The notes: generated by a model not told the origin, from the sequence alone. A DNA stretch of 64,000 nucleotides from Podarcis muralis (GCF_964188315.1 NC_135671.1:38006001-38070000), one strand, 5' to 3'; shown: positions 34,451-60,765, counted from the stretch's first letter. Numbers and translations: made by a program.

Positions 34451-37400
34451 ATGGAGCCCTCCTGCTTTCTGCGCTTCTTGCCGCTCTTGTTGCTGTGCCC
34501 AGCAGGAGCCCCCTTCCGGATCTGTGCCTTCAACACTCAGCGCTTTGCCCAAGGGAAGGCAAGCAAGGCCAACGTCATGGACACACTTGTCAAGGTGGGG
34601 ACTTCAAGGCAACCCCCGACGGGATGCATGTCGCTTCTGTGGGTTGAATTCCTTCTTTAGACAGGATTTGCTCACATGAACAACGTGTATTAACAAGTTC
34701 TAATGGGTGTGGAAGGAGTAGGAAGGACAGGTTAGGAAGAGAAGCCACTAAAGTGAGGTGTAGGGCTGGATCTGCTATGAAACCAATGAAGCTTAAGCTT
34801 CAGAGCACCTAATTCCAGAGGAGCCCCAGAAGTGACTTTAGTCTACATTGCTTTAAAAAAATTGGTCCAGTAGATCCAATTTGAGTTGCATGACTCAAAT
34901 TGATTAATTTTTTGTTGTGTATATTTTGATAATCCCAAAGTTTTTTAGTAAAGCTGTTGTAAAGGTGTGGCAATCTGTTGTGGAACAACCCCATTGAAGA
35001 AAATAACAGTGGTTGGTTACCCAGACCTTTTTGCTGGTTGCGAAGGGGCCCCCATGGCAGTTCAAGTTTCAGGGCTCCCAAAACATAGGTCCGTCACTGG
35101 TTAGGAGCTCCAGGGGAGAGCCAAAGTTCAGTAAGAACACATGCTTTGCAGGCAGAAGGTTCACTTTTAAATGTGAACTGAATCAGAATTCTCTCCCATT
35201 CCCTAGGTATAGCCCAGACACAGATTTACCACCTTGTTTAGGACTAACATGTTGGAGTCCAACAACATTTGGGCTGTCTACCCCTGATATACAAGCTAAT
35301 GTGTCTCTGTTCCCTCCCACAGATCCTCTCTCGTTGTGATATTGCTGTCCTACAAGAGGTGATGGATGCAAAGGGAAAAGCAGTTCCTGCCTTGGTGGCT
35401 GCCCTGAATCGGTGAGTGTGAGTAATATGGGAGAAATGCAACCAGAGGGAGAGGAATCCATGAAGAGATAGTGGAGGAGACGACAACAGGGCCTTTGGGG
35501 GGAAAAATGGGAGGAAAGCTGGACAGTTGCATGATGGGAGCAGAGCTGGCCCAGATATTTTGGTGCTTGAGGTGGAAAAACCCTTCCCCCTAAATTGTGT
35601 TGGGCATAATTCCCCAGGCTGTTCTGCATGAGTCTCACAGGAATGAGAGTGAGATCTGTGCAAGACTACCAATACCATTTATTTCAATGAGGCTTGTGCA
35701 GGAAAATTGCCAGTGTGCTGTGCTTTGTCTCATGGCAGGACTGTGTCAGAATGGGGAGGAATGTAGGATATGGTGATGGTGTGTGGGTGTGTGGGTGGGT
35801 GTTTGTACACACTAACCCCCAGAGCCAGGCAGTAAACAGAATACAGTGGTACCTCTGGTTACGAACTTAATTTGTTCCAGAGGTCCGTTCTTAACCTGAG
35901 GTACCACTTTAGCTAATAGGGCCTCCTGCTGCCGCCCCGCTGCTGGTGCACGATTTCTGTTCTCTTCCTGAGGTAAAGTTCTTAACCCGAGGTACTACTT
36001 CTGGGTTAGCAGAGTCTGTAACCCGAAGTGTTTGTAACCCGACATACCACTGTACCAGCTAAGGAGCCCCACTGGGTTCATAGCTCTGAGGCTCATGCTG
36101 GTAGTCAGGGAAACTACTGAACCCAAGGCCAGCCAGCAGGAGCTCATTGAACCTGATGCACAGCACCAGGGCACATAAAACCAGCACCAGGGCTCTCACA
36201 GGTGCCTTCCTGTGGGCCCAAAAAACAGAGTGCCTCGCACAGTACCTCACCAGTCCACAGCCCAGGGAATGCATCAGGTGGGAAGCTATGGAACATGGGA
36301 GCGTGCTTGTCTTCAGAGGGGGGGATTGTCCCTTTAAGAGGCTCTTCTTTTCCATAAGGGACAGAGCATAGGAGAGATGGACTAGACAGAAGAAGAGCTC
36401 AGTTCACTTCCAACCTTTGTTGGAACAAGTTGCTACCTAGAAGCTCTCCTTGGTGCTGTCCTCCTCCAAACTATGATGTGGTGAGAATAGTAAGGGCCCA
36501 CCTTTACTCATGGAAGGCAAGGCTATCAGCAGTTACAAGCCATGGTAGCTATGTTCTTCGTCCATGGTTGGAGGCAGCAGTTTTTTCCCTGAATACCAGT
36601 TCTGGAAGCCACAGGTCCTGCTTCTGGACTTCCCATAGGCATCTGGTTGGTCATTGTGGGAAAAGGATGCTAGACTAGATGGGCCTTTGACCTGATTCAG
36701 CTTGGCTCTTGTGCTCTCCCCTTCCAGTAGCTCCTGGAGTATCAAGGGACTGAGGTCCAAGAGTTGACACATACCTTAGGTGGGAGCAGAGGAGCAAGTC
36801 ACACAGGCTAGTGGTTCTCCACAGCAGCACAGTGACCATACTGAGGGAGGGCACTGGATCTGGGAGCTTTATTGTTCTCCTGAATCACCCTACTCCCAGC
36901 ACCAAGAGGATTCTGGGCTGTAATGATGGTGTCCTGGCCTGAACTGCCTGATGCTCCCTCCTCTGACCTGGCTGGTGCAGGAAGCGAGTGTCTGACTTGC
37001 AAAACTACCACATTGCCTTATAGTAGGGCTGGAGAACCTGTGGCCCTCCAGATGTTGTTGGAATTAACTCCCATCAGCTCCAGCCAACAAAGGCCAATGA
37101 TCAGGGATGGTAGTTGTAGTTCAGTAGCTAGAGGAATACAGGTTTTCCATTCCGACTTTACAGTGAGACTTTTTCTCTATTGATCCACTCACTGGCTGAA
37201 GTGCTTTTTATATATCCATGTATATTTTCAATGCAGCTGAATTCTCTTTTCCTGTCAGGTATCATAGTTCTAGTCCCTATACCTACCTCACCAGCCCTCT
37301 GCTGGGCCGGAACAACTACCAAGAACGCTATGTATTCATATACAGGTGAGTGTCATGAGTGTGAGTGTGCATTTAGATGATGATGGTGATGAATTAACGT

Positions 37401-40400
37401 TTATATAGTGATCTTTAGTACATATTAAAGAGCTTTCATAAATAATAATTTTAGAGCTTTTATAAATAATAATTTCTATAATTTTTATAGAGCTTTTTTT
37501 TTTAGGGACGCGGGTGGCGCTGTGGGTAAAAGCCTCAGCGCCTAGGGCTTGCCGATCGAAAGGTCGGCGGTTTGAATCCCCGCAACGGGGTGCGCTCCCG
37601 TTGCTCGGTCCCAGCGCCTGCCAACCTAGCAGTTCGAAAGCACCCCCGGGTGCAAGTAGATAAATAGGGACCACTTATAAGCGGGAAGGTAAACGGCGTT
37701 TCCGTGTGCGGCTCTGGCTCGCCAGAGCAGCGATGTCACGCTGGCCACGTGACCCGGAAGTGTCTCCGGACAGCGCTGGCCCCCGGCCTCTTAAGCGAGA
37801 TGGGTGCACAACCCTAGAGTCTGTCAAGACTGGCCTGTACGGGCAGGGGTACCTTATAGAGCTTTTAACTACATTATCTCAGATATCCTTTACAATGCTG
37901 TAAGATATGGAGAAAATAATACTGACCTATCACAAATGGGAGATTGGAGGCTGATAGAATAGAAGCTTGGGGTATGTCACACTTTTAAATTGTGTCTTAC
38001 TCCCCATCTTCAGAGGCTGAGGCTGTGGGTTCAGAGGAGACACCAGACTGCCCTGGAAGCTCTGGCACAAGAGGAGCCTGTTTTTGCCAGCACCTTTCTA
38101 GCACTTATTGCCTTGTTCTACCTTGACTTACCGTACCTTCCTTTGCTTTGCCAGAGCCTGGACTTTGCTTTATCTCGCCTTGCTTTGCTTGACTCTGTGC
38201 TGCCCTGGCTGAACCCTGGACTTTACCCTGCTCTGCTGGACCTTGAACTCTTGTCCTGCTTCTGCCAGAACTTTCATGCTGCTGTGGCCATCACTTGGAA
38301 CAGAACCAGGTTATTTGAGGGAGGGCCTTCTCCTGTACAAACCATCCAGGTCACTGTGGTCTGTAGATGGGGCTTTCATGACTGTGCCACATTTTTAAAA
38401 TGCAGAAATAATGAGACCCTTTTATTGTGAGAAAAACGCAATTGTTGGTGCCCAACATAGGATGTGCCTTGTTACCTTGGTGAGGGCTCTGCATCAATTT
38501 CCTGCCCCACATATTGTCCTTAATTGTAATCCCCACAGATGCAAGGAGTCAAGTTTCTCTCTTAGCAAATATCCACCACTTATTTCACCCTTATTCGCTA
38601 GAATAATGTGAAATAAATTATTCCTTTTGTTGCTCACACAGCGCTGTCTCCATAGGTACAATCTAGCCTTCAGCTTCACCCTGGGTGCTTCCAAACTGTT
38701 GTTGTGTAGGACTCAATCGCATATTGGCCACTTCAGGTTGCACAATTGCAGTTGATTGGAAAGTGTTGTACAACAAACCCACAGCCCTAAAAGATTTGAC
38801 TCTTTGTGATCAGAAAACTGATACGGAAATGTACTGGAAAGTGTGCTTTAAACACAATGTCATCTAATCTCCCTGTAAACAAATCAGCCTCAATTAAAAT
38901 GCCATTTGGAAGCAGCCCATGTAATAATAATAATTACTACTACTACTACTAATATTTATATGAATACCTACTGAGACAATCCACAAAAAGCAAATGGATC
39001 ATAATGAATTACTGTTGAAACAATAAATATTTTGGGGGGGAGGGTGCCAAATTTTGTCCTCGCTCAGAGCACCACATTAAAGTCCCCCCCTGCATACTTT
39101 CACCTCTTCCCTGGGGCCAGAGTTATTTCTGTGTTCTCCCCTCCCCTAGGGAACAGAAGACTCGGATGCTGGACTTCTACTCCTACGAAGACAGACATCC
39201 AGACCGGCCTGATGTCTTCGCTCGCGAGCCCTTCATCGTCCGCGTCAGCATTCCAAACAAAAGTAAGGGGCCCAGGACATCTCAGGGGTTCTCTTTCTGC
39301 ATGGGGGAAAGTGGGGAGCTTGAACTTCCAGAGGGTGATATCTGGGTTTGATATCCATTTTGTTTTATGGAAAGTAGAAGGGTTGGATGCTATTCTGGAG
39401 GAAGGGTTTTGCATGTGGGTTAAACCACAGAGCCTAGGACTTGCTGATCAGAAGGTTGGCGGTTCGAATCCCCGTGACGGGGTGAGCTCCCGTTGCTCGG
39501 TCCCTGCTCCTGCCAACTTAGCAGTTCAAAAGCACATCAAAGTGCAAGTAGATAAATAGGTACCACTCTGGCGGGAAGGTAAACGGCGTTTCCGTGCGCT
39601 GCTCTGGTTCACCAGAAGCCGCTTAGTCACACCAGCTCCCTCGGCCAGTAAAGCGAGATGAGCGCAGAAACCCCAGAGTCGGCCACGACTGGACCTAATG
39701 GTCAGGGGTCCCTTTACCTTTACCTATAAAGCTGATTAGGTGCAGAATCAGAAGTCTTTCCTCTTCTTCCTCTTTTTTCTTTTTTCTTTATTTAATCTCT
39801 TTTAGTTTTTAATATTAAAAATGCTTGGTATTTGAAGTTAACTTTGGTGTATTATTTTTTCTCTTTTTTCCAAGCACTAATAAAAAAACATTATAATAAA
39901 ATAATAAAAAAGAGGGCTGAGAGTTATTAGGAGACTCCTATTCCCCTTACAGAGCTACAGTTTCCAGAGTTCTCTGGAAAGAAGGATTGACTGTTAAACA
40001 ACTCTGAGAATTGTAGCTCTGCGAGGATATTGGGGGAGTGGTCTCCTCTCAGCACCCTGAGCAGACTATAGTTCCCAGGATGATTGGGGGGGTGTTGAAA
40101 GCCATGACTATTTAAAGTGGCATGATACTGCTTTAAACCTATAGTGTAGATGCAGTCTAAGAGACCACCTACTTTACTCCTGCATTTTCTCATATCATCC
40201 AAGCAAAGATCTGTTGACAATAGCATTCATACAGCATGACTAGTTTGGACATAATAGAAAACCATGGGTTTTTGTTATGTGAACAAGCTGCAACAAACCT
40301 TGTTTTTGTGTATTCCACATTCTGCTTTATCATATGCTAGAGTAGGAAATCAGAAGTATCCAGACAAACCATAGTTCCTGTGATGTATGAACTCAGGGAA

Positions 40401-43400
40401 ATATGATTTGCTCGAATTATGTTTAGTGAGAGCAAGCCAGGATCAAAATGTTGGTTTCAGATCTTGTTTTGTTTTCAAACCGTAGGGGCTATATTGAGTT
40501 GGAATTCCAAGTTGCCTAGATTACTCTGTACCTTTTTCTCCATTTCCATTCTTGAGAACTCAAGGAGCTGGTGTTGATCCCACAGCACACAATGCCCAAG
40601 GCAGCTGAAACTGAAATAGATGCTCTCTATGATGTTTTCCTGAGTGTGAAGGAACGCTGGGGCACAGAGGTAAGGGATGGGGACTTGCAAGGGAGCTGAG
40701 GTTTAAGAGAATGGCAGGGGATTTGCTGTCTCACCGTGCATCTACATGGGAAATTTTTCTGCTGCTTCACTGCTGCAGCCACTACTGACCATGTCCAGCC
40801 ATTGTAATGTTTGCAGTCTTGTTGACCATTGGTAGATATCATGGACTGGCTGGAAGCAGAGGAGTCATGGGAAGCACCAGCTGGGGAACCCCAAGGGGAA
40901 GAAGGCTCAGAGCCAGGGGAGTGGTTCTGGGATGGCGATGAGTGGTCAGAGGAAGCAGTCTGGAAGGAGGTGTCAGAAGCTGAAGAGGTAACAGGGTTTA
41001 GTGAGCAGGAAGAGGCTGTGGCAGAGAGCAGTCCAAAATCAGAGGTATAAGTGGAAGTTGGGGAGGGGGGAGAGGCAGAGTTCAGGCAGGCTGCTGAAGA
41101 AGCCAAGGAGTTTCCCCTTCAAACTACAACCAGCCCCCCTTTCCCCTGGTCTCCCAGAAAGCAAAAAGGGCAGAGCAAAGACAGACAAGGCAAAAAAGTC
41201 TCAGATTGCTTGGGAAGGACCAGGGTGTGTGAGAGAGAGAGACTTAGAGAGCAGTGGGAAGGCAGGGATCTTCAGTCCTCACAACTGCCCCATTGGGGCA
41301 AGACCTAGCTGGAAGAATTGCTGTGCTCATTAGGCCTGAGCTGTTTTGTTTCTTTGAATAAAGAGTTAACTTCACTGACACCTTGTAAGTTATTGCTGAC
41401 TGGCAAACGGCTTCCACCTTGACAGTAGATTCTGCCATATTGGAAATATGTCTGGATGAAGCATGTGATGCCACCACAACCAATACAGCTTGCATCTCAG
41501 ACAGAGCACAAGGCAAGATGTTGAGCCAAGTATATGAGATAGCACATATTGGAGAAGCTGGTCCTTTAGGTAACCAGGCCCCAGGCGGTTAGGTTTCCTG
41601 TCCTGCTCCTTGACATAAAAAGTTCCTCTCCCCTAATCTGAAGGACAAACACCATCTCTGCTTGAGAACCTGGCAACTGCTTATTTTCCAACCAGCATCT
41701 CTTTTCTGCTCTCACTAATCCCGTTGCTCACTTAACGGATCTTGGCCAGCTGATTTTTTCTCTTTCTTATTCCTCCCCAGGATATGATTTTCTTGGGTGA
41801 TTTCAATGCTGACTGTGGCTATGTGGCAAAGAAACGCTGGGGACAAATCCGCCTACGCCAAGACCCTGGCTTTCATTGGCTCATCGGTGACAATGCTGAC
41901 ACCACCGTTCGGGACACAACCCACTGTGCCTATGACAGGTGAGATCCTGGAACCAGCCTTGCTGGTCAGGGGATGAATTGCATGATCCACTCTACTCTAA
42001 CCCATGCCTCACTCTTCCTTACACCTAAACAGGATTGTGGTCCATGGAGAACGCTGCCTGGCTGCTGTGGTGCCTGGATCTGCTCAGCCCTTCAACTTTG
42101 CCAAAGAATTTGGGCTCTCAGAAGCAGAGGTACCTGGAAATTCCGGTTGGGAGGGGGAAATTGCTTGCTGATAAACACATAGTATGGTATGTTTCCGCAT
42201 GCACTGGGCCGGTGACATGTTGGGACAGCCCCATCGTCATCATGGCAGCCATGAAGTCCTGAGCCAGTTGCTTTGGCATGAATGTTGAAGTCCCACAGAA
42301 CCAGCAGCCTGGGAGTCCTCAGCACCGCCTCTGAGACCAGCTCTGTCAATTCAGGCAGGGAGACTGCTGGGCGGCGAGGTGGGCGGTAAACCAGCAGAAT
42401 CCCTAATCTGTCCTGATTTCCCAGTGCCAGGATCCCCCCAACTGGACAGAAAGCCTGGAGAGAGATGAAATGTCTATAGACCACAGCAACTCCCCTCCCT
42501 GACCCTCAAGTCTGCCCTGATGTTGCACCACGTAACCAGGTTGGCATAGCTGGGTGAGACCAATTCCACCCTGCACACCCACCCAGGTCTCAGTGATGCA
42601 GAGCAGGTTGGCTTCTGCCTCTGCTGTGTGCCCCTTACCTGCCCTGTCCCCCCCCACCCCCCCCAGAGCCACTGTGATTGGGGTCACCTCTGCCTCCCCC
42701 AGCTCCTCTTTACCCAGAACACATTCTACATTCCTTATTTTAAAACAACAAAACCTAATTTCAAAACACACGTTAGTAGCAGTTAAAACAATTTAAAACA
42801 TTTTAAACAATTAGGGCAATAATAACAGCAGTGCAAACCCCCAACAAATGCCCCTAACAATATCTGAACCCAAGAGTCTGTTCAGCCCCCTCAGCTTTGC
42901 TGCTGGAGTCAGTCAGTGGAAAAGCCCTGCAAGGCGGGGAGTAGGTCTTCCAGGACTGAGAGCCAAGGTGGTTGATGCTTCTTCCTTACCTGGAATGGAG
43001 GGAGTGTGATTGCATGTAGAAACTCTCCTAAAGTACAAAAAGTTACATTATTCATTATTGCATTTCCCCCTACCTTTTCCTCCAAGGAGTTCAAGGGGGC
43101 ATATACAGTTCTCCCTCTCAACCCCCACAACATCCCTGTGAGGTCGGTTAGTCTAAGAGGCAGCGATTGACCCAAGGTCTCCCAGTGAGCTTCATGGTCA
43201 AGTGGGGATTTGAACCCTGGTCTCACAGGTCCTAGTCCGACCCTCTAACCACTACACCATACTAGCGCTCAGTTGCTCCTCTCACTTCTGCTACTGTCCC
43301 CACCCACCAGCCCCCAAGCTGAAGAAGGTTCCCCACTCCTGATATAGAGCGTTACAGGGTTGCCCATGCCTGCATTAAAGCACTGGAATCTGCTATGGAA

Positions 43401-43617
43401 AGGAACCCTTTTTTTGTACAGGGAATAGAAACCAGATCTCTTGTTGCCCAGCTCCTCATTTTCTCTTTACCTGCTGTTTCAGGCTTTGGAGATCAGCGAC
43501 CATTATCCTGTAGAGGTGGAACTGAACAGAGCCCATTGGAGATGCCAGCAAGCCAGTCCAGCTGGCCTTGTGTTGCTGGCCTTAGTCATGCTGGCTGGCT
43601 CAGGATATGGCATCTAA
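34451..43617 (+). CDS. DNASE1L1: Deoxyribonuclease-1-like 1 (DNase X), copy A, 311 aa, with signal peptide and GPI-type hydrophobic C-terminus
   Basis: Exons 34451-34594, 35323-35411, 37259-37345, 39150-39262, 40557-40669, 41781-41938, 42033-42129, 43483-43617 (936 nt). FRICAFN, LQEV, DVFAREPF, PQHT, GDFNADC, THCAYDR, ISDHYPVE; tail ..PAGLVLLALVMLAGSGYGI*. Synteny with RPL10/TAFAZZIN. Confidence 0.93.
35844..36052. mobile_element. Same MITE family, copy 4
   Basis: TIRs, TA flanks, small internal deletion. Confidence 0.8.
37505..37855 (+). mobile_element. Sauria SINE, full length, young
   Basis: GGGACGCGGGTGGCGCTG start, B-box-like GGTTTGAATCCC, AGGTAAACGGCGTTTCCGTG core, CpGs intact; TTATAGAGCTTTT on both flanks. 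Confidence 0.88.
39412..39725 (+). mobile_element. Sauria SINE, slightly 5'-truncated
   Basis: GGTTCGAATCCCCGTGACGGGGTGAGCTCCCG..CCCTTTACCTTTACC. Confidence 0.85.
40837..41424 (+). mobile_element. Solo LTR (probably Gypsy-type) in intron 5 of DNase copy A
   Basis: Termini TATCA (from TGTCA)..TGACA; 5-bp TSD GTAGA at 40832-40836 / 41425-41429; internal AATAAA near the 3' end. Confidence 0.75.
42190..42850 (-). mobile_element. Degraded LINE endonuclease fragment (L2/CR1-like) in intron 7 of DNase copy A
   Basis: Frameshifted LLCITETW, LLVYRPP, LVLWDFNIH motifs. Confidence 0.7.
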
Positions 43618-49157: not shown

Positions 49158-51162
49158 TAAAGCATGTGTTCTGCCACTGAGCCACAGCCCTCCCCTATCA
49201 TTCTGATTTCTAAGATGCATTAAAGGGCAGCTTTGAAGCTGACAAGACCAAACACACAGTTTAGAAGGCTGTGCCATAAATGAGTTGCTATGGATTTTTC
49301 AGTTGCTTTGTTTTCGGCTGTGGGTCGGTTCCCTCTCTGTCTAGGAAGAGACGTATAAAGAGGGTTGGATATGGATTACAGTATATATGTTAGTAGAATT
49401 TTCATGCAGTAGAAACTCTAAACTCAATGATAAAAAGCAAATGCTTTTTGTGATGTTCTATAATGGTTTTCTGTAGCCTATCTTGGGTCATGATTGAACT
49501 AAACATCAAAGATAATTGGTTTAAATAAGGAACATTTTCCAGGGGGGTAGTCATGTTAGTCTGCTGCTGCTGCTGCAACAACAACAACAAAAAGACTTGT
49601 GGCACCTTAAAGATGTAATACCTTTTATTACAGCAAAACGTTTCATGGGGTGTAATCTTCAGGTATGGGCAACAAATGTAAGGATGGAAGTGAACTGCAA
49701 TGGAATACAAAAAGTACAGTCTGACAATTCAACTAGAGCTTGAATGTATGCAAAATGAGGAACGTTTAATCCATGCCAAAATGCTCCAGCTTGGTTTCAG
49801 TGGTCCTCAGCAAGGTTCATGGTTCGTAATGAGAAGCACAGGGTCTTCTGCAAAACAACTTTATGCTCTCTCCCATTCATTATTGCTCCTGTTATTTGTG
49901 GGTAAGCTCTCACTGCCATACTTTTAAAAAGCTGATTGTATTTCCTCTACCTTTGCAATCCGTCTTCCTTTAATGCATAGATTTGTTCAAAAAATCTATC
50001 AATAGATTGACCTTCTCACCATGACCATTTCCAATGAAGACCTTCCAAAGGATTTGTCCTGATAGGACAGTATCAAATTTAAAAATGTATATACACATAG
50101 CAGTGCGGCCTCTGTATACCGTGAACCTGTGCTTTAATTATACCAACAGAAAAATCTGAAATGATCAATAAAATAATGAATTAATAAAAGATAACTGCTA
50201 GATGTGATTTAATCAGAGAGAAAGTGCAAAAAGCAGGTATCAGGAGTTGGTCAGCAATACATCACACAGAATAAGTGAAATCTTTCTTAGAAGAAACAAG
50301 GTCTGCTCAGGCCCAATGGGCACAGCAAATCTACTTGGTAGATCTTGCCTCTATGAGGCAGTTGTGGGACTGAAGGTCCCTGCCTCCCCCCAGCTGCCTA
50401 AGTCTCTTCCTCTCCCACAATTTGAGACTGTGCTGGTGTGCCTGCCTTTGCTTCTCCCCCTTCATCCTTCTTCTAGTCCTGGGAGGTCAGGGAAGAAGGT
50501 AGCTTGTCACACCAAGAGCAGGGGAACTCCTGGCTTCTTCACCAGCCTGACTCATCTCTGCCTCTCTGGCCTCCCCTCTTGCTTCCGATTCTGATTCTGC
50601 ACGTCTCTCTGCCACAGACTCTTCCTGCTCACTAAACCCTGTTACATCTTCAGCTTCAGACACATCCTCTTCCCAGGCTTCTCCCTCTGTCTACTCATCA
50701 TCATCCCACCACCAAGCCCTAGGCTCTGAGCATTAGTTCCTTGGGGGTTTCCTAGCTTGTACCTTCCACCATTCCTCTGTGTCCAACCAACCCATGACAC
50801 AGAGAGATGGGGAGAGAGATGTGTATATGGACAAAGGGATCATTTATGGACAATCCCTGAGGCTGCATATACTGTTCAGCTTTTTCTGAATGATTGCTGG
50901 TTCTGGAAGGACAGTGGCAGCAAGGGAGGAGTAGGGAGGAGAAAGTGGGAACCTGACTTCTGGGATGCCCTTCTCTCTCAGCGAGTAATCATGCTGGTGT
51001 GGCCCAGCACTTTCTCTGCTAGGTTGTCATATGTTCAACACAACAGTCAGTACAAAGGCCTTTTCCCTCCCCTGCCTGGATGCTGATGCAGCAATACAGT
51101 CCTCTGGGCTATCATCACCCTCCAGCATCAGCTCAATACATACATCAAGGAACACCAGGGCT

Positions 51163-54100
51163 ATGGGACAGAGCTTCACCCTTCTGCTCATCTTTCTGGG
51201 CGTGCAGGTTGTGGCAGGAGCCTTCAAAATCTGTGCTTTCAACATACGCAGTTTTGGAAGAGCCAAGGCAGCAAACCGGAGGGTCATGGGAGCTCTCGTC
51301 CAGGTGAGTTTGTGATTGATTTGGACCAAGGGCAATGGTGATAACAGTGCTTCATTACTTTAATGAGCAATTCTTGCTCTCAGCCCTGCTCAGAAACCAT
51401 GAACTGTATTCCTAACCCTAGAGATCTGGGGGCAGCTGTGGTTATGGCAGAGGTAAAAACACTGTGGATGGCAGGCTGCAAATGTATTCCTGCTACAATG
51501 ATAAGCAAATAGAATCATAGAATTAATAGGGACCTGAAGGGTAGTCTAGTCCAACCCTCTGCAATGCAGCAATCTCAACTAAAGCATCCATAGCAGATGA
51601 CCATAAGCAAATAGCAGGGAGAAAAATGTACCAGCTACTCCACAAGCTGGGAGATTTAAGACCATGTAACAAAAATGAATTCTGAGCCGGAGGTCTTTCA
51701 GTTGAGGCAGTCTGACAAGCAGCTAAGTTCAAAGGCCTGCTCTAGCCTGTATTAAATATGGGTTTAATTGCAAACTTAGGAATTTTAGGAGCATGTATCT
51801 CATAACTATAGGGCTCAAGCTCAGTGATAGAGCATCTGCCTTGCATGCAAAAGGTCCCATGTTCAAATCTTGGCATTGCTAAGACTGTTGTCTGAAACCT
51901 GGAAAGCTGCTACCAGTCAGTGTAGATACTAAGCAAAATAGTTCAGTGTCTGGCTTGGTAGAAGGCATCTGTCTAATACAAGTCATACAGCAACCCCTTG
52001 TTTTTAAGCAAAGGGATGTGTGCTTTTGACAAACATTGGCTCACTTGATTTTTTTATAATGTCAATGCAATGTGTAGAAACCACACATTGGTCAGCTTCA
52101 CCCTGACTGGAGTGCTGAAGCAATTCCTAATTCATCTCTAGGCAAGACCTGAAAACCTTTGCATGGAATCTTAGAGACAGAATTGTAGAGTTGGAAGGGA
52201 TCCTGAGGGTCATCTAGTCCAACCCCCTGCAATGCAGAAATCTCAGCTAAAGCTCTCTGCTTAAAAACCTCCAAGGAAGGAGAATTCACCACCTTCTTAT
52301 GGAGTCCATTCCACTGACAAACAGCTCTTACTGTCAGAAAGTTATTTTTGATGTTTAGTCAGAATCTCCTTTCTTATAACTTGAAGCCATCACTTTGGGT
52401 TCTATCCTCAACAGCAGAAGAAAACAAGTTTGCTCCATCTTCTATGTGACATCCCTTTGGAGTCGGTTATCATAGTCTCCTCTTTTCCAGTCTAAACATA
52501 CCCAACTCCCACAACCGTTCCACATAAGTCTTGGTTCCCAGGGCCTTGTCCATCCCCACCATGTCAACGTCCCCGGTCACCGCATGCTAAGGCAGTGATA
52601 TGAACAAATGCTGCATCTGGTTACCTTTGATCATTCTTTCCAATATGTTTACTTAAGAGTTTGGCGAGATTTTGTGAGATCTGGCAGATGTTGATGCTGC
52701 TTCTCCACCAGGGCAGAGGTGGAAGGGCTGCTGCTTCACTCTGCTCACGAGTGGAGGGGGCCTGGTGCCTACATTCCTTTCTGTTACTAATTAATTCATC
52801 CAAGACGTCAATGGATTTCCCCATCACTTCCTGCACCACAAACTGGTTACTGTTGTTTTTAAAAAGCAGGCAACAAAGCACTCTAATCCACTATGAAGTT
52901 CTGTAGAACAGTGGCAATGCGGAAGCAACCAGGACCAAGAGAAAGGGGGAAACATGTGTGACAGTGACAATGCCCAGAGCACCTCATTGCCCTGACCACC
53001 CACTCTTCTCCCACTGCCAGATCCTCTCTCGCTGTGATATTTCTGCCATCCAAGAGGTGCGGGACTCCAGGGGTGCAGCTATTCAGACGTTGCTGCGGGA
53101 GCTGAACAGGTAGTACCAGCAGAGGCTGCTAATCGTAGACATAGTCAAAACATGCAGTAGAAGGAGGGGGTATAATCTGAATGGTACAATTTCAGGTTAC
53201 AGGTGGTGTGGGGAGATCGCACAGTTAGTTTATTTTTATTCACATGGAGATTTCTTTTTTTTATTGTGGGGGAGCATTCTAACAAGGCTTCCCCCCATTG
53301 CTCCATTCTTCATCTGAGGATCCATTCTGTTATCAGGCAAAGTGGCATCTTGAACTCTTTCTCCCTGGCAGGTATGACCCCTCTCATCACTACAGCCGCC
53401 TGGAGAGCAAGAGGCTGGGGCGAGGCAGCTACAAGGAGCAGAATGTCTTTGTGTATCGGTAATGTCTGGGGGAGCTGGGAACATGACTATATCAGAGCCC
53501 CAGGAACCAAAATCCAACTCTGGCCTATATATGCATGTATATCCTCTTCCAAGATAGTGTTTTACAGGGGTGGCCATTTTGTTACCCACGGTGAAGGACA
53601 AAATGATACCTGCCTTCCTCAATTTCAATCACCAAAGCTGAGCAGTGTGAGAATTTATTTATTACTTATTTCAGTAATAAACACCCAAGTCACTAGGCAG
53701 TAAGGCTAAAAAGATACAGTGAATATGAAATCAGTTAAAACTAACCAAAAAATAAAAAACGTAGCTAAAATGCCTGCTGATTTTTAAAGAAAGAAAACAT
53801 TTTCACTAGATGTCAAAACTTCAAGGGGGGGGGGCTACCTGATCTCAGCTGTGGTTTCCACAGAAATGGATCCACAGTACTGAACATACAATATGTGCTA
53901 GAAGCTGTCCAGAATGGTTAGGTGAGGTATAACAACAACAACAATTTCCTTGCACTGCTGTTCCCCTCCTGCCCACCCACCTAGCTATGGCATCTACCAG
54001 CTGAGGCAGCCACTTCACTGCCTAACGGTAGGGCCAATTCTGGTATTTTAATTGCCAATCAATTATAACACATTTTAACAATATGCATTTCCATATTTGC

Positions 54101-56407
54101 TACCCACCCTTCCTCCAGAACTATTTTTTAGCCTCAGAAAAATGTATTTGGGCAAACAGGGGTATGAGACAATAATTTTACAGTGAACTTTGTTTTGGCT
54201 GAGCAGCGATTTCAGTCTGGATTTGCCACATATAAAGCTGGACTTAAGTGTCCATCCACTACTCCACACCTGCTCATTAGTGTTGGGTCTCGCAGCTCTG
54301 GTTTGTAGTTGGTGAACCAAGGCCTGGATCTCCTGAGGATATAAACCTGTGTTTGGGCTGAGACTTTGGCCTGCTGACAGAGGCTTACCTGATTTAATCA
54401 TAATAATGACCCCTTCACAAAGACAGATTGCAAATCGGGGTGAAAGGGAGTATCAGGGTGCTGACATCTATTTTTTTTTTAAAAAAAGGATAGAGGAACA
54501 TTCAGTCATGAGAGCTTCCACTTGCAGGCTCTGTATTGGAACAAAACCAGACACAGGTTTACTTTATCTTCCCTCTGATGCCTACTTTTTTGTCCTTGAC
54601 AGAATGGATGTTGTGTCAGTTACTGATTGGTGCCAGTTTGGGGATGAGGATGACAGAGATTACAAGGCATTTGCCCGGGGGCCCTTTGCCGCTCGCTTTC
54701 ACTCTCCATGCACAGGTAACACCCAGTTTCTCCACACAGAGGTCTAAATTGTTCTGGATACTTGTCCACAGATTCTTGGTGATCCAGGAGCTGTTACCTC
54801 CAAGGCAGTTATGGAAGATTACCTCGGTTTTAGGACTGAAAGCCTGGCATTTCTTATGGACATTTCTTATGGTCTGTTCTTAACCTGAAACTGTTCTTAA
54901 CCTGAAGCACCACTTCAGCTAATAGGGTTTCCTGCCGCCGTGCGATTTCTGTTCTCATCCTGAAGCAAAGTTCTTAACCCCAGGTACTATTTCTGGGTTA
55001 GCGGAGTCTGTAACCTGAAGCGTATGTAACCTGAAGCGTATGTAACCCGAGGTACCACTGTATAGCCTTAGTTGGAGTGTTCAGTGGTGCTTAGGGTAGA
55101 TGAGGAAACAGAGGAAATTGAATGTATTGAGAAGCTGAGGAAAAGGAGCTAGCTCTTGTTAACTGTGCATGTGTGTGTAAAAACAGCCACTAAGAGGAAA
55201 GATTAGGGAGATCAGTAGCGAAACCTCTCCCATCATCTGAACTGCTGTCTTCCACCCCACAGCTATCCTAGACTTTGTGCTACTTTTACACCACACCAGT
55301 CCTCGGGAAGCTGCCCATGAGCTTGATCTGCTGTTTGGAGTGTGCACAGAACTGATGCAACGGTGGAAAACTGAGGTATATTATGGGGGCAGGAGATGTT
55401 GTAAACTCAGCAGGTCACTAAGAACATAAAAGCCCTGCTGGATCAGAAGACCCATCTAGTCCAACATCTTGTTCTCACAGTGGCTGACCAGATGTGTAAT
55501 AGGGCATTCTCCTGGTCCCGATTCCCAGAAACTAGTTTTCAGAGGCATGCCACCTCCCCTAGTGGAGATGCTACTCACATACAACCCTTTCCTTGTGATC
55601 TGAATAGAATGTGATGCTGCTGGGAGATCTGAATGCTGCTGGTGCCTACATCCCAGCAAGTGCTTGGGCTGGGATCCGCCTGCGCAATCACCTTGCTTTC
55701 CACTGGCTCATTGGTGACGGAGAGGACACCACAGTCAGTCACCGGACCTGCTGTGCCTACGACAGGTACCAGAGGACACTTTTCAGCTCCACTCACCCAT
55801 TCTCAACATGCTTCCCCTTATTCCCAAAAGCAATCCAGTATTTGCCAGCCTTTCAAGCAAGCATGCCAGACAGAAAGTAAGCCCTGAGGAGATTGTGTCA
55901 CTTACAGTGTATACCATATGCCCTTTTTTGGTGTGGTTTTGCTTCTGGTCTGTTGAGCTGGAGAGCAGACAACACTATAGGCAGAGACTACTCCTGATCT
56001 GTGCCATAGCCAGGCCAAGAACTTAAGAGCTAACCTGGCACACTAGACTCCTGCTTTGTGTCACGTAAACTGACCATGCTTTTTTTGTTGGGGGCAGAGC
56101 AGAGACCCATCACACTCCACTTTTGTACTCTGTCCTCCCATGCTAGGATTATAGTCCATGGAGAAGAGCTGCTTGGCGCCATTGTACCCAGATCTGCCAA
56201 GCCTTTCAACTTCACACAAGCACTCGGACTATCGGAGGAAGAGGTGGGTGTAATTGGGCTCCTTTCTTAACTGGCTGCTAGTTTGAATATGATGTAGAGA
56301 CCTGAATAACCCACACCATTTCATTCCTACAGGCCCTAGCAATCAGCGACCACTATCCTGTAGAGGTGAATCTTCGGCTTGCTCCGAAAGCCCAGCGGGA
56401 GCTCTAA
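51163..56407 (+). CDS. Second DNase I-family gene (DNASE1L1-like copy B), 290 aa, signal peptide, no GPI tail
   Basis: Exons 51163-51303, 53021-53109, 53372-53458, 54603-54715, 55263-55375, 55608-55765, 56147-56243, 56333-56407 (873 nt); internal exon sizes identical to copy A. FKICAFN, IQEVRD, LHHTSP, GDLNAAG, TCCAYDR, ISDHYPVE..PKAQREL*. Confidence 0.93.
52170..52560 (-). mobile_element. CR1 LINE 3' fragment
   Basis: Minus GMFRLEKRRL motif and CR1 3' UTR (TTGGACTAGATGACCC..CCCTTCCAACTCTAC); related pieces at ~32445-32750 and ~51510-51610. Confidence 0.75.
54820..55060. mobile_element. Same MITE family, copy 6 (left end degenerate)
   Basis: Shared body; right TIR GAGGTACCACTG|TA. Confidence 0.75.

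Positions 56408-57531: not shown

Positions 57532-60765
<3,234 letters not shown>

Follow-up and report, generated by a model that had tools for sequence, protein, structure and literature searches.

We analysed a stretch of 64,000 nucleotides of Podarcis muralis DNA (GCF_964188315.1 NC_135671.1:38006001-38070000), hereafter called the window, which carries two genes of the DNase I family in tandem, designated copy A and copy B. Copy B (51163-56407, plus strand; window translation) is an intact family member with eight coding exons and 290 codons. Textbooks treat the C173-C209 bridge as the 'essential' disulfide of DNase I; at position 173, copy B encodes glycine. We consider it probable that copy B is the P. 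muralis DNase1L1L and that it most likely still specifies an active DNase, devoid of a C173-C209 bridge that was lost on the stem of squamates and turtles. The gene itself falls into an already known orthogroup, described by Mori et al. (2022, Sci Rep; PMC9208542). The new elements are the clade-wide loss of C173-C209 and the presence of a squamate-fixed cysteine beside it.

Assignment of copy B to the DNase1L1L orthogroup

The DNase1L1L orthogroup has been defined by a tandem arrangement with DNase1L1, synteny with Rpl10, the lack of a glycosylphosphatidylinositol (GPI) signal, a C-terminal 'EL' and a C4-C32 cysteine pair, which forms a real disulfide in the crystal structure of DNase1L3 (PMC9208542). 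According to the same study, the orthogroup was lost in birds and placental mammals; the P. muralis protein is not in its table. In the window, the gene order was DNASE1L1, copy B and RPL10 on the minus strand. The same DNase1L1 - DNase1L1L - RPL10 order was present at the Elgaria and Eretmochelys loci, with the downstream gene recognised as Ribosomal_L16 (PF00252). Copy A matched the P. muralis DNase1L1 sequence (Pmur1L1) from the supplement of PMC9208542. All eight exon peptides of copy B matched copy A in order, revealing the same eight-coding-exon layout; when compared exon by exon, the two copies were only about 50% identical and are thus old paralogues. The two cysteines corresponding to C4 (Cys24, 51232-51234, exon 1; numbering of Mori et al.) and its partner C32 (Cys52, 53033-53035, exon 2) were present in copy B and invariant among the orthologues, and the C4-C32 bond is predicted here from this pair. 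The C-terminus of copy B read KAQREL followed by the stop codon (QREL, 56393-56404; TAA, 56405-56407, both in exon 8), with no hydrophobic GPI-type tail.

The maximum-likelihood tree (IQ-TREE, 41 proteins) placed copy B in a clade with zebrafish dnase1l1l (support 94/95). The clade mirrored the species tree and comprised sharks, ray-finned fishes with the coelacanth, amphibians, a monotreme with marsupials, turtles and squamates; its sauropsid part was supported at 100/98. DNase1L1, represented in the tree by only three rows, all long-branched, formed a separate clade (99/96), and so did DNase1L4 (100/100). A DNase1L3-like shark protein and DNase1/1L2 were also located apart from the DNase1L1L clade. 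Copy B did not show the traits of DNase1L4, i.e., the lack of both a signal peptide and the cysteine pair. Besides the C4-C32 pair, direct reading of the sequence gave an N-terminal hydrophobic stretch of approximately 20 residues, ending in AGA directly before FKIC (predicted signal-peptide-like stretch, residues 1-20, 51163-51222, plus strand). No crocodilian or bird DNase1L1L was found among the best 120 matches, and no further large search was made. Pfam scans with single exons gave no match above the cut-off because the exons are too short; for exon 6, the score against PF03372 was 13.3 bits, and a DUF739 match on exon 7 was dismissed as chance.

Residues and predicted fold

The NCBI protein 'deoxyribonuclease-1-like [Podarcis muralis]' (P0154) was reached by searching a representative library with exon 6, followed by a word search with the Varanus match. 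It matched all eight exon peptides of copy B exactly, and its independent mapping onto the window returned identical exon coordinates. All full-length analyses of copy B used residues 45-334 of this protein (P0154:45-334), and the exons were joined only for the substitution rates given below. Residue equivalences were taken from HMMER alignments to bovine DNase I (1dnk_A) and human DNase1L3 (7kiu_A).

An earlier sequence-only reading of this DNA had drawn attention to the motifs GDLNAAGAY, TCCAYDR, YKAFARGPF, DWCQF, SPCT and GVCTE, and all of them are present in copy B. Its claim that C173 and the Ca2+ ligands D107 and E112 had been lost was borne out by the alignment to 1dnk_A, which has Gly193 (55641-55643, exon 6), Lys127 (54664-54666, exon 4) and Gly132 (54679-54681, exon 4) at these sites, the last two belonging to Ca2+ site II. 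The remaining changes relative to the bovine enzyme were Ala192 in place of D172 and Cys229 in place of N208; C209 was kept as Cys230 (Cys229-Cys230, 55749-55754, exon 6). Copy B thus lacks the C173-C209 pair, as it has Gly at 173. The residues that the sequence-only reading had listed as retained (E39, R41, E78, R111, H134, D168, N170, D212 and H252) were recovered in the alignment, together with N7, R9, R73, Y76, Y175 and D251.

Conservation was evaluated in a site table of 47 well-modelled orthologues, consisting of 26 sauropsid (23 squamate sequences plus turtles) and 21 other sequences (amphibian, monotreme, marsupial, fish and shark); a motif scan covered 116 matches. The catalytic and metal-binding residues E39, E78, H134, D168, N170, D212 and H252, as well as the DNA contacts R9, R41, Y76 and R111, were invariant in all 47 orthologues. 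The best sequence matches among known structures were DNase1L3 and DNase I (E values of 1e-73 to 1e-65). The AlphaFold2 model, with a predicted local distance difference test (pLDDT) of 89.2 and a predicted template modelling (pTM) score of 0.88, was superimposed by Foldseek on DNase I and DNase1L3 structures with template modelling (TM) scores of 0.92-0.95 and a root-mean-square deviation of 1.6-2.2 Å. Copy B is therefore predicted with confidence to adopt the DNase I fold.

Distribution of the changes among orthologues

Glycine replaced C173 in 26/26 sequences from squamates and turtles, as against 0/21 of the other DNase1L1L proteins. Exactly the same distribution was observed for Cys171 (55343-55345, exon 5; bovine position 151). 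Only four changes were fixed specifically in sauropsids, namely A56, A135, C171 and G193 (alignment positions of P0154:45-334). In each of them, a larger residue gave way to a smaller one (L/V to A, I/V to A, F/V/I to C and C to G), which hints that the protein core was repacked in a coordinated manner along the branch on which the disulfide disappeared. Since the loss of C173 is common to squamates and turtles, it predates their split, and the aligned sequences point to a single ancient, clade-wide loss of the disulfide followed by continued purifying selection. Consistently, the Anolis protein G1KY77 reads GDLNAAG and the Chrysemys protein XP_008174635.1 reads GDLNAGG. A recent survey calls C173-C209 common to all DNase1 proteins, and its text mentions no such loss (PMC9208542). 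Judging from the orthologues compared here, the published universality of this bridge overlooks the DNase1L1L proteins of squamates and turtles.

The substitution of His208 by cysteine (Cys229) was present in 23/23 squamates and, within the site table, in squamates only; no more than four substitutions are both fixed in squamates and specific to them, and this is one of the four. The neighbouring Cys230 was less stable, with tyrosine in three of the 23 squamates (Varanus, Elgaria and Lerista). Cys116 (54631-54633, exon 4; bovine Y95) varied among sauropsids, being W, R or Y in 5/23 tabulated squamates, H in Phrynosoma, and C or Y among turtles. Cys142 of the SPCT motif (54709-54711, exon 4) was absent from the other 22 aligned squamate sequences, with Tyr in P. 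lilfordi and Zootoca. Overall, 133 of the 270 mature positions were invariant in squamates.

The other changes were distributed more widely. GDLNA (F169L) and the absence of D172 characterised all DNase1L1L clades, sharks included. The change of E112 to glycine toggled within squamates and was also seen in turtles and marsupials and in part of the amphibians, fishes and sharks. Many sauropsids had lost the acidic residue at 107, and the length of the loop varied.

Two further observations concern cysteines elsewhere in the orthogroup. The DNase1L1L protein of Sinocyclocheilus grahami (P0246), a member of a cavefish genus, kept C173 and also had CC at 208/209 (GDLNAAC ... CCAYDR); Cys208 therefore arose independently outside squamates. 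At position 156 (bovine A136), two residues past the catalytic H134, a cysteine forming an HHTCP motif is patchily distributed within the orthogroup: sharks, marsupials, the platypus, all snakes and some of the amphibians and fishes have it, with Ser in lizards and turtles. Where present, this cysteine is probably an unpaired thiol close to the active site.

Selection on copy B

The sequence-only reading had regarded the gene as intact, which agrees with the exact exon matches and with the substitution rates. Pairwise NG86 values, the only measure of selection used, gave ratios of nonsynonymous to synonymous substitution rates (dN/dS) of 0.09-0.22 in 28/28 pairs among seven squamates and one turtle. 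Four of the pairs involving P. muralis were bootstrapped, giving 95% upper limits of 0.17-0.31. Copy B is under strong purifying selection. Its open reading frame was intact, with canonical splice sites, in P. muralis and seven other mapped species, and intact orthologous proteins were found in the database for about 24 squamates and several turtles. Among the exon differences listed from three other sequencing runs, the best supported were four synonymous and one nonsynonymous. The contigs from other runs covering exon 6 carried only synonymous differences, at 55739 and 55760.

Loss of the bridge and alternative explanations

The reading we favour, copy B as a DNase1L1L that has lost its bridge, can be formulated as follows. 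The replacement of C173 by glycine on the stem of squamates and turtles would have removed the family disulfide, and three other fixed changes on the same branch, also towards smaller residues, would have included a new cysteine in the helix after H134. Squamates would later have fixed cysteine at 208, after which position 209 would have become dispensable, giving way to tyrosine in Varanus, Elgaria and Lerista. The loop of Ca2+ site II appears degenerate. The enzyme would still be a divalent-cation-dependent endonuclease of the DNase I type, entering the secretory pathway without a GPI anchor, and the new cysteines would be free thiols instead of a replacement bridge. Activity without the C173-C209 bridge is most likely kept because the His134/His252 acid-base pair, the Mg2+ ligands and the DNA contacts are intact and the C4-C32 pair is retained. 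Activity in the absence of a stable disulfide has been reported for human DNase1L2, and alkylation of free thiols at the equivalent positions abolishes that activity (PMC8002113). The biological role could resemble that in zebrafish, where lens fibre cells clear their nuclear DNA cell-autonomously.

Several points weigh against this reading. Bovine DNase I is inactivated when C173-C209 is reduced (cited in PMC8002113), so that we infer activity without the bridge rather than observe it. The role in the lens is an extrapolation by analogy with zebrafish alone. In a raw RNA sequencing (RNA-seq) run from the same species, of which approximately 12% was read, there were 0 reads on any exon and only intronic repeats were covered. 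The sole spliced evidence was one contig of run X1, in which intron 7 (89 nt) was exactly removed and introns 5 and 6 were retained. The last 350 letters of this contig (55466-56465) match nothing in the window beyond 56465; possible explanations are an incompletely processed transcript, an alternative 3' end or a chimeric contig. Contigs from the remaining runs, which were guessed to be RNA, were colinear with the genome and mostly resembled DNA or pre-mRNA.

The position of the new cysteines bears on whether another bridge has taken over. In the AlphaFold2 model, a helix (160-178) follows directly after His154, with Cys171 about 11 residues down, at roughly two-thirds of its length, and residues 229/230 lie three or four residues before the catalytic Asp233, at the rim of the active site. 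A replacement bridge is unlikely by this model, since Cys171 is topologically far from 229/230 and since Cys116 is not conserved. A disulfide swap pairing C209 with Cys171 was considered, as both changes occurred on the same branch, and was found unlikely by the topology of the fold. The loss of C230 in three squamates means that a vicinal C229-C230 bridge is not obligatory, and this candidate was likewise rejected.

The same data apply to the idea of a neofunctionalised or redox-regulated enzyme, in which a new disulfide (C229-C230, or either of them with C116 or C171) or a reactive thiol next to Ca2+ site I would alter the dependence on metal or redox state or the choice of substrate. We judge this unlikely. 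It could draw on the rank of Cys229 among only four squamate-specific fixed substitutions and of G193 and Cys171 among only four sauropsid-specific ones, on the two nucleotide steps that H208 to C takes according to the genetic code, on the lost ligands of Ca2+ site II, and on the inactivation of DNase1L2 by alkylation of thiols at the equivalent positions (PMC8002113), by which thiols can matter here. Nevertheless, no catalytic or DNA-contact residue differs between sharks and lizards or in the groups between them, the fold is preserved, C230 is tyrosine in Varanus, Elgaria and Lerista, Cys116 varies among squamates and turtles, and by topology Cys171 would sit far down its helix from the 208/209 rim. 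Invariance as such is also not special when 133/270 mature positions are invariant in squamates.

An incipient pseudogene, that is, a relaxed and unexpressed duplicate decaying after the loss of a stabilising disulfide, seems very improbable. The missing exon reads in one same-species RNA-seq run and the loss of the orthogroup in birds and placental mammals (PMC9208542) would suit such a decay. However, the open reading frame is intact and canonically spliced here and in seven other species, dN/dS remains at 0.09-0.22, and the loss of C173 predates the squamate-turtle split, with constraint continuing afterwards. The constraint together with the confident model rules out a decaying copy. It is scarcely credible that the substitutions are assembly errors or private to this assembly, given that P. 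lilfordi, Zootoca and every other squamate examined carry the same residues and that the contigs of other runs differ only synonymously over exon 6.

Thus, the sequence-only reading needs revision in its interpretation. It had presented the changes as novelties of copy B replacing motifs of copy A; the two are ancient paralogues (about 50% identical), and GDLNA and the loss of D172 are shared by the whole orthogroup. As for the rearranged cysteines, the C173-C209 pair is indeed absent, but the protein is not disulfide-free in sequence, with the C4-C32 pair kept. The proposed rewired disulfide is not supported, Cys171 being topologically far and C209 being Tyr in three squamates, and nothing points to a new substrate, with invariant catalytic and DNA-contact residues. 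Among the outcomes which that reading had named as counting against it, a known paralogue that already has these features was found in DNase1L1L; the substitutions proved neither private to the assembly nor accompanied by relaxed selection.

The C-terminal EL tail

The 'EL' tail was called functionally unknown by Mori et al. (PMC9208542). It terminated 98 of the 106 orthogroup proteins with an intact C-terminus. In the scan of P0151-P0266, ranging from sharks to lizards, 101 of these 106 ended in EL, DL or EF, in forms such as QREL, DREL, RHEL, RNEL, HQEL and the HQEF of the platypus. According to Raykhel et al. (2007, PMC2140024), KDEL-like retrieval to the endoplasmic reticulum (ER) accepts any residue except Pro at -3, requires E at -2 and allows either L or F at -1. 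Because the EL tail of DNase1L1L fits this tolerance, it may be an ER-retention signal, which would make the protein an ER-resident DNase. A more far-reaching combination would describe a long-lived, bridge-free nuclease in which the squamate-invariant Cys229, next to Ca2+ site I, serves as a redox or metal switch through its free thiol, the orthogroup being held in the ER by xxEL and reaching chromatin only at the breakdown of nuclear envelope and ER; we regard this combination as unlikely.

Gene model and neighbouring features

The coding sequence of copy B is 873 nt long, ends with TAA and is interrupted exclusively by GT-AG introns; its exons measure 141, 89, 87, 113, 113, 158, 97 and 75 nt, all on the plus strand. 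Exon 1 (51163-51303) contains the start codon, the signal-peptide-like stretch and the mature N-terminus. Exon 2 (53021-53109) encodes Cys52 and the catalytic E59 (bovine E39) with R61 (R41), and exon 3 (53372-53458) encodes R94, Y97 and E99, corresponding to bovine R73, Y76 and E78. Cys116, the degenerate Ca2+ site II, R131 (bovine R111) and Cys142 are located in exon 4 (54603-54715), and the catalytic H154 (bovine H134) and Cys171 in exon 5 (55263-55375). Exon 6 (55608-55765) carries D188 and N190 (bovine D168 and N170), D233 (bovine D212) and the Ca2+ site I loop with D221, T223, S225 and T228. Exon 7 (56147-56243) is followed by the 89-nt intron 7, and exon 8 (56333-56407) includes D272 and H273 (bovine D251 and H252). 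The exon sizes were equal in Zootoca, Elgaria, Varanus, Python, Sceloporus and P. muralis, with a longer exon 1 in Eublepharis; those of a sea turtle equalled copy B except for exons 1 and 4.

In the NCBI models of P. muralis and Zootoca, translation begins at an in-frame ATG further upstream (51031), which adds 44 residues (51031-51162), whereas the conserved MGQ/MAQ (51163) is the start in the models of P. lilfordi, Varanus and Elgaria. The upstream extension is identical at 39/44 residues between Podarcis and Zootoca, compared with 98% for the rest of the protein, and because of this lower conservation it is probably 5' untranslated region. A start at 51031 would put the signal-peptide-like stretch inside the protein.

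Copy A, DNASE1L1, occupies 34451-43617 on the plus strand and contains GDFNADC, THCAYDR and a hydrophobic GPI-type C-terminal tail. Downstream of copy B, translation of an open reading frame on the opposite strand (57956-58171) gave an exon that we take to be part of RPL10. Copy A differed from the published P. muralis DNase1L1 (supplement of PMC9208542) by at least two residues, L/M at residue 7 and S/P in the tail, presumably polymorphisms. Within introns 1 and 4 of copy B, the intervals 52193-52391 and 54780-55177 showed very high depth in all four runs, and many joints between opposite strands occurred between approximately 54871 and 55043 (intron 4). Both intervals have the appearance of abundant interspersed repeats, with an inverted-repeat or hairpin structure in the second of them.

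Comparison with known DNases

The findings amount to a small correction of the literature and a modest lineage-wide curiosity, and not to a new kind of enzyme. The DNase1L1L proteins of squamates and turtles may nonetheless be viewed as a natural experiment on stabilising the DNase I fold without its bridge, which bears on the engineering of therapeutic DNases.

Copy B resembles DNase1L1L, including zebrafish dnase1l1l, in its tandem position, RPL10 synteny, signal-peptide-like N-terminus, C4-C32 pair, GDLNA motif, lack of a GPI signal and terminal EL. It differs in the feature that sets the sauropsid members apart, the missing C173, which is kept by 21/21 non-sauropsid members, and squamates add Cys208. 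The involvement of DNase1L1L in lens-fibre denucleation is known from zebrafish only (PMC9208542). DNASE1L1 (DNase X, copy A) shares with copy B the locus, the exon layout, the C4-C32 pair and the FAR.PF and HWLIGD motifs. In contrast, copy A keeps C173-C209, D107/E112 and a GPI-type tail, none of which is found in copy B, and the two fall into separate clades.

Bovine and human DNase I (1dnk, 4awn) and human DNase1L3 (7kiu) are close to copy B in the modelled structure (TM 0.93-0.95), in sequence (44-46% identity) and in all catalytic residues. The Ca2+ site I loop of DNase I is largely kept (T205 to S), and with DNase1L3 copy B shares the N-terminal disulfide pair and a 201-209 loop that is one residue longer. 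Unlike these enzymes, copy B has neither C173-C209 nor C101-C104, the ligands of Ca2+ site II are replaced, and the basic C-terminal tail of DNase1L3 is absent. The nearest parallels for the missing bridge come from two other family members. DNase1L2 was reported to be active with its 173/209-equivalent cysteines reduced (PMC8002113), although both cysteines are present there. DNase1L4 reads GDFNADG and has no cysteine pair, but it has no signal peptide and belongs to a separate clade. From these two precedents, it follows that the bridge is not indispensable to the fold.

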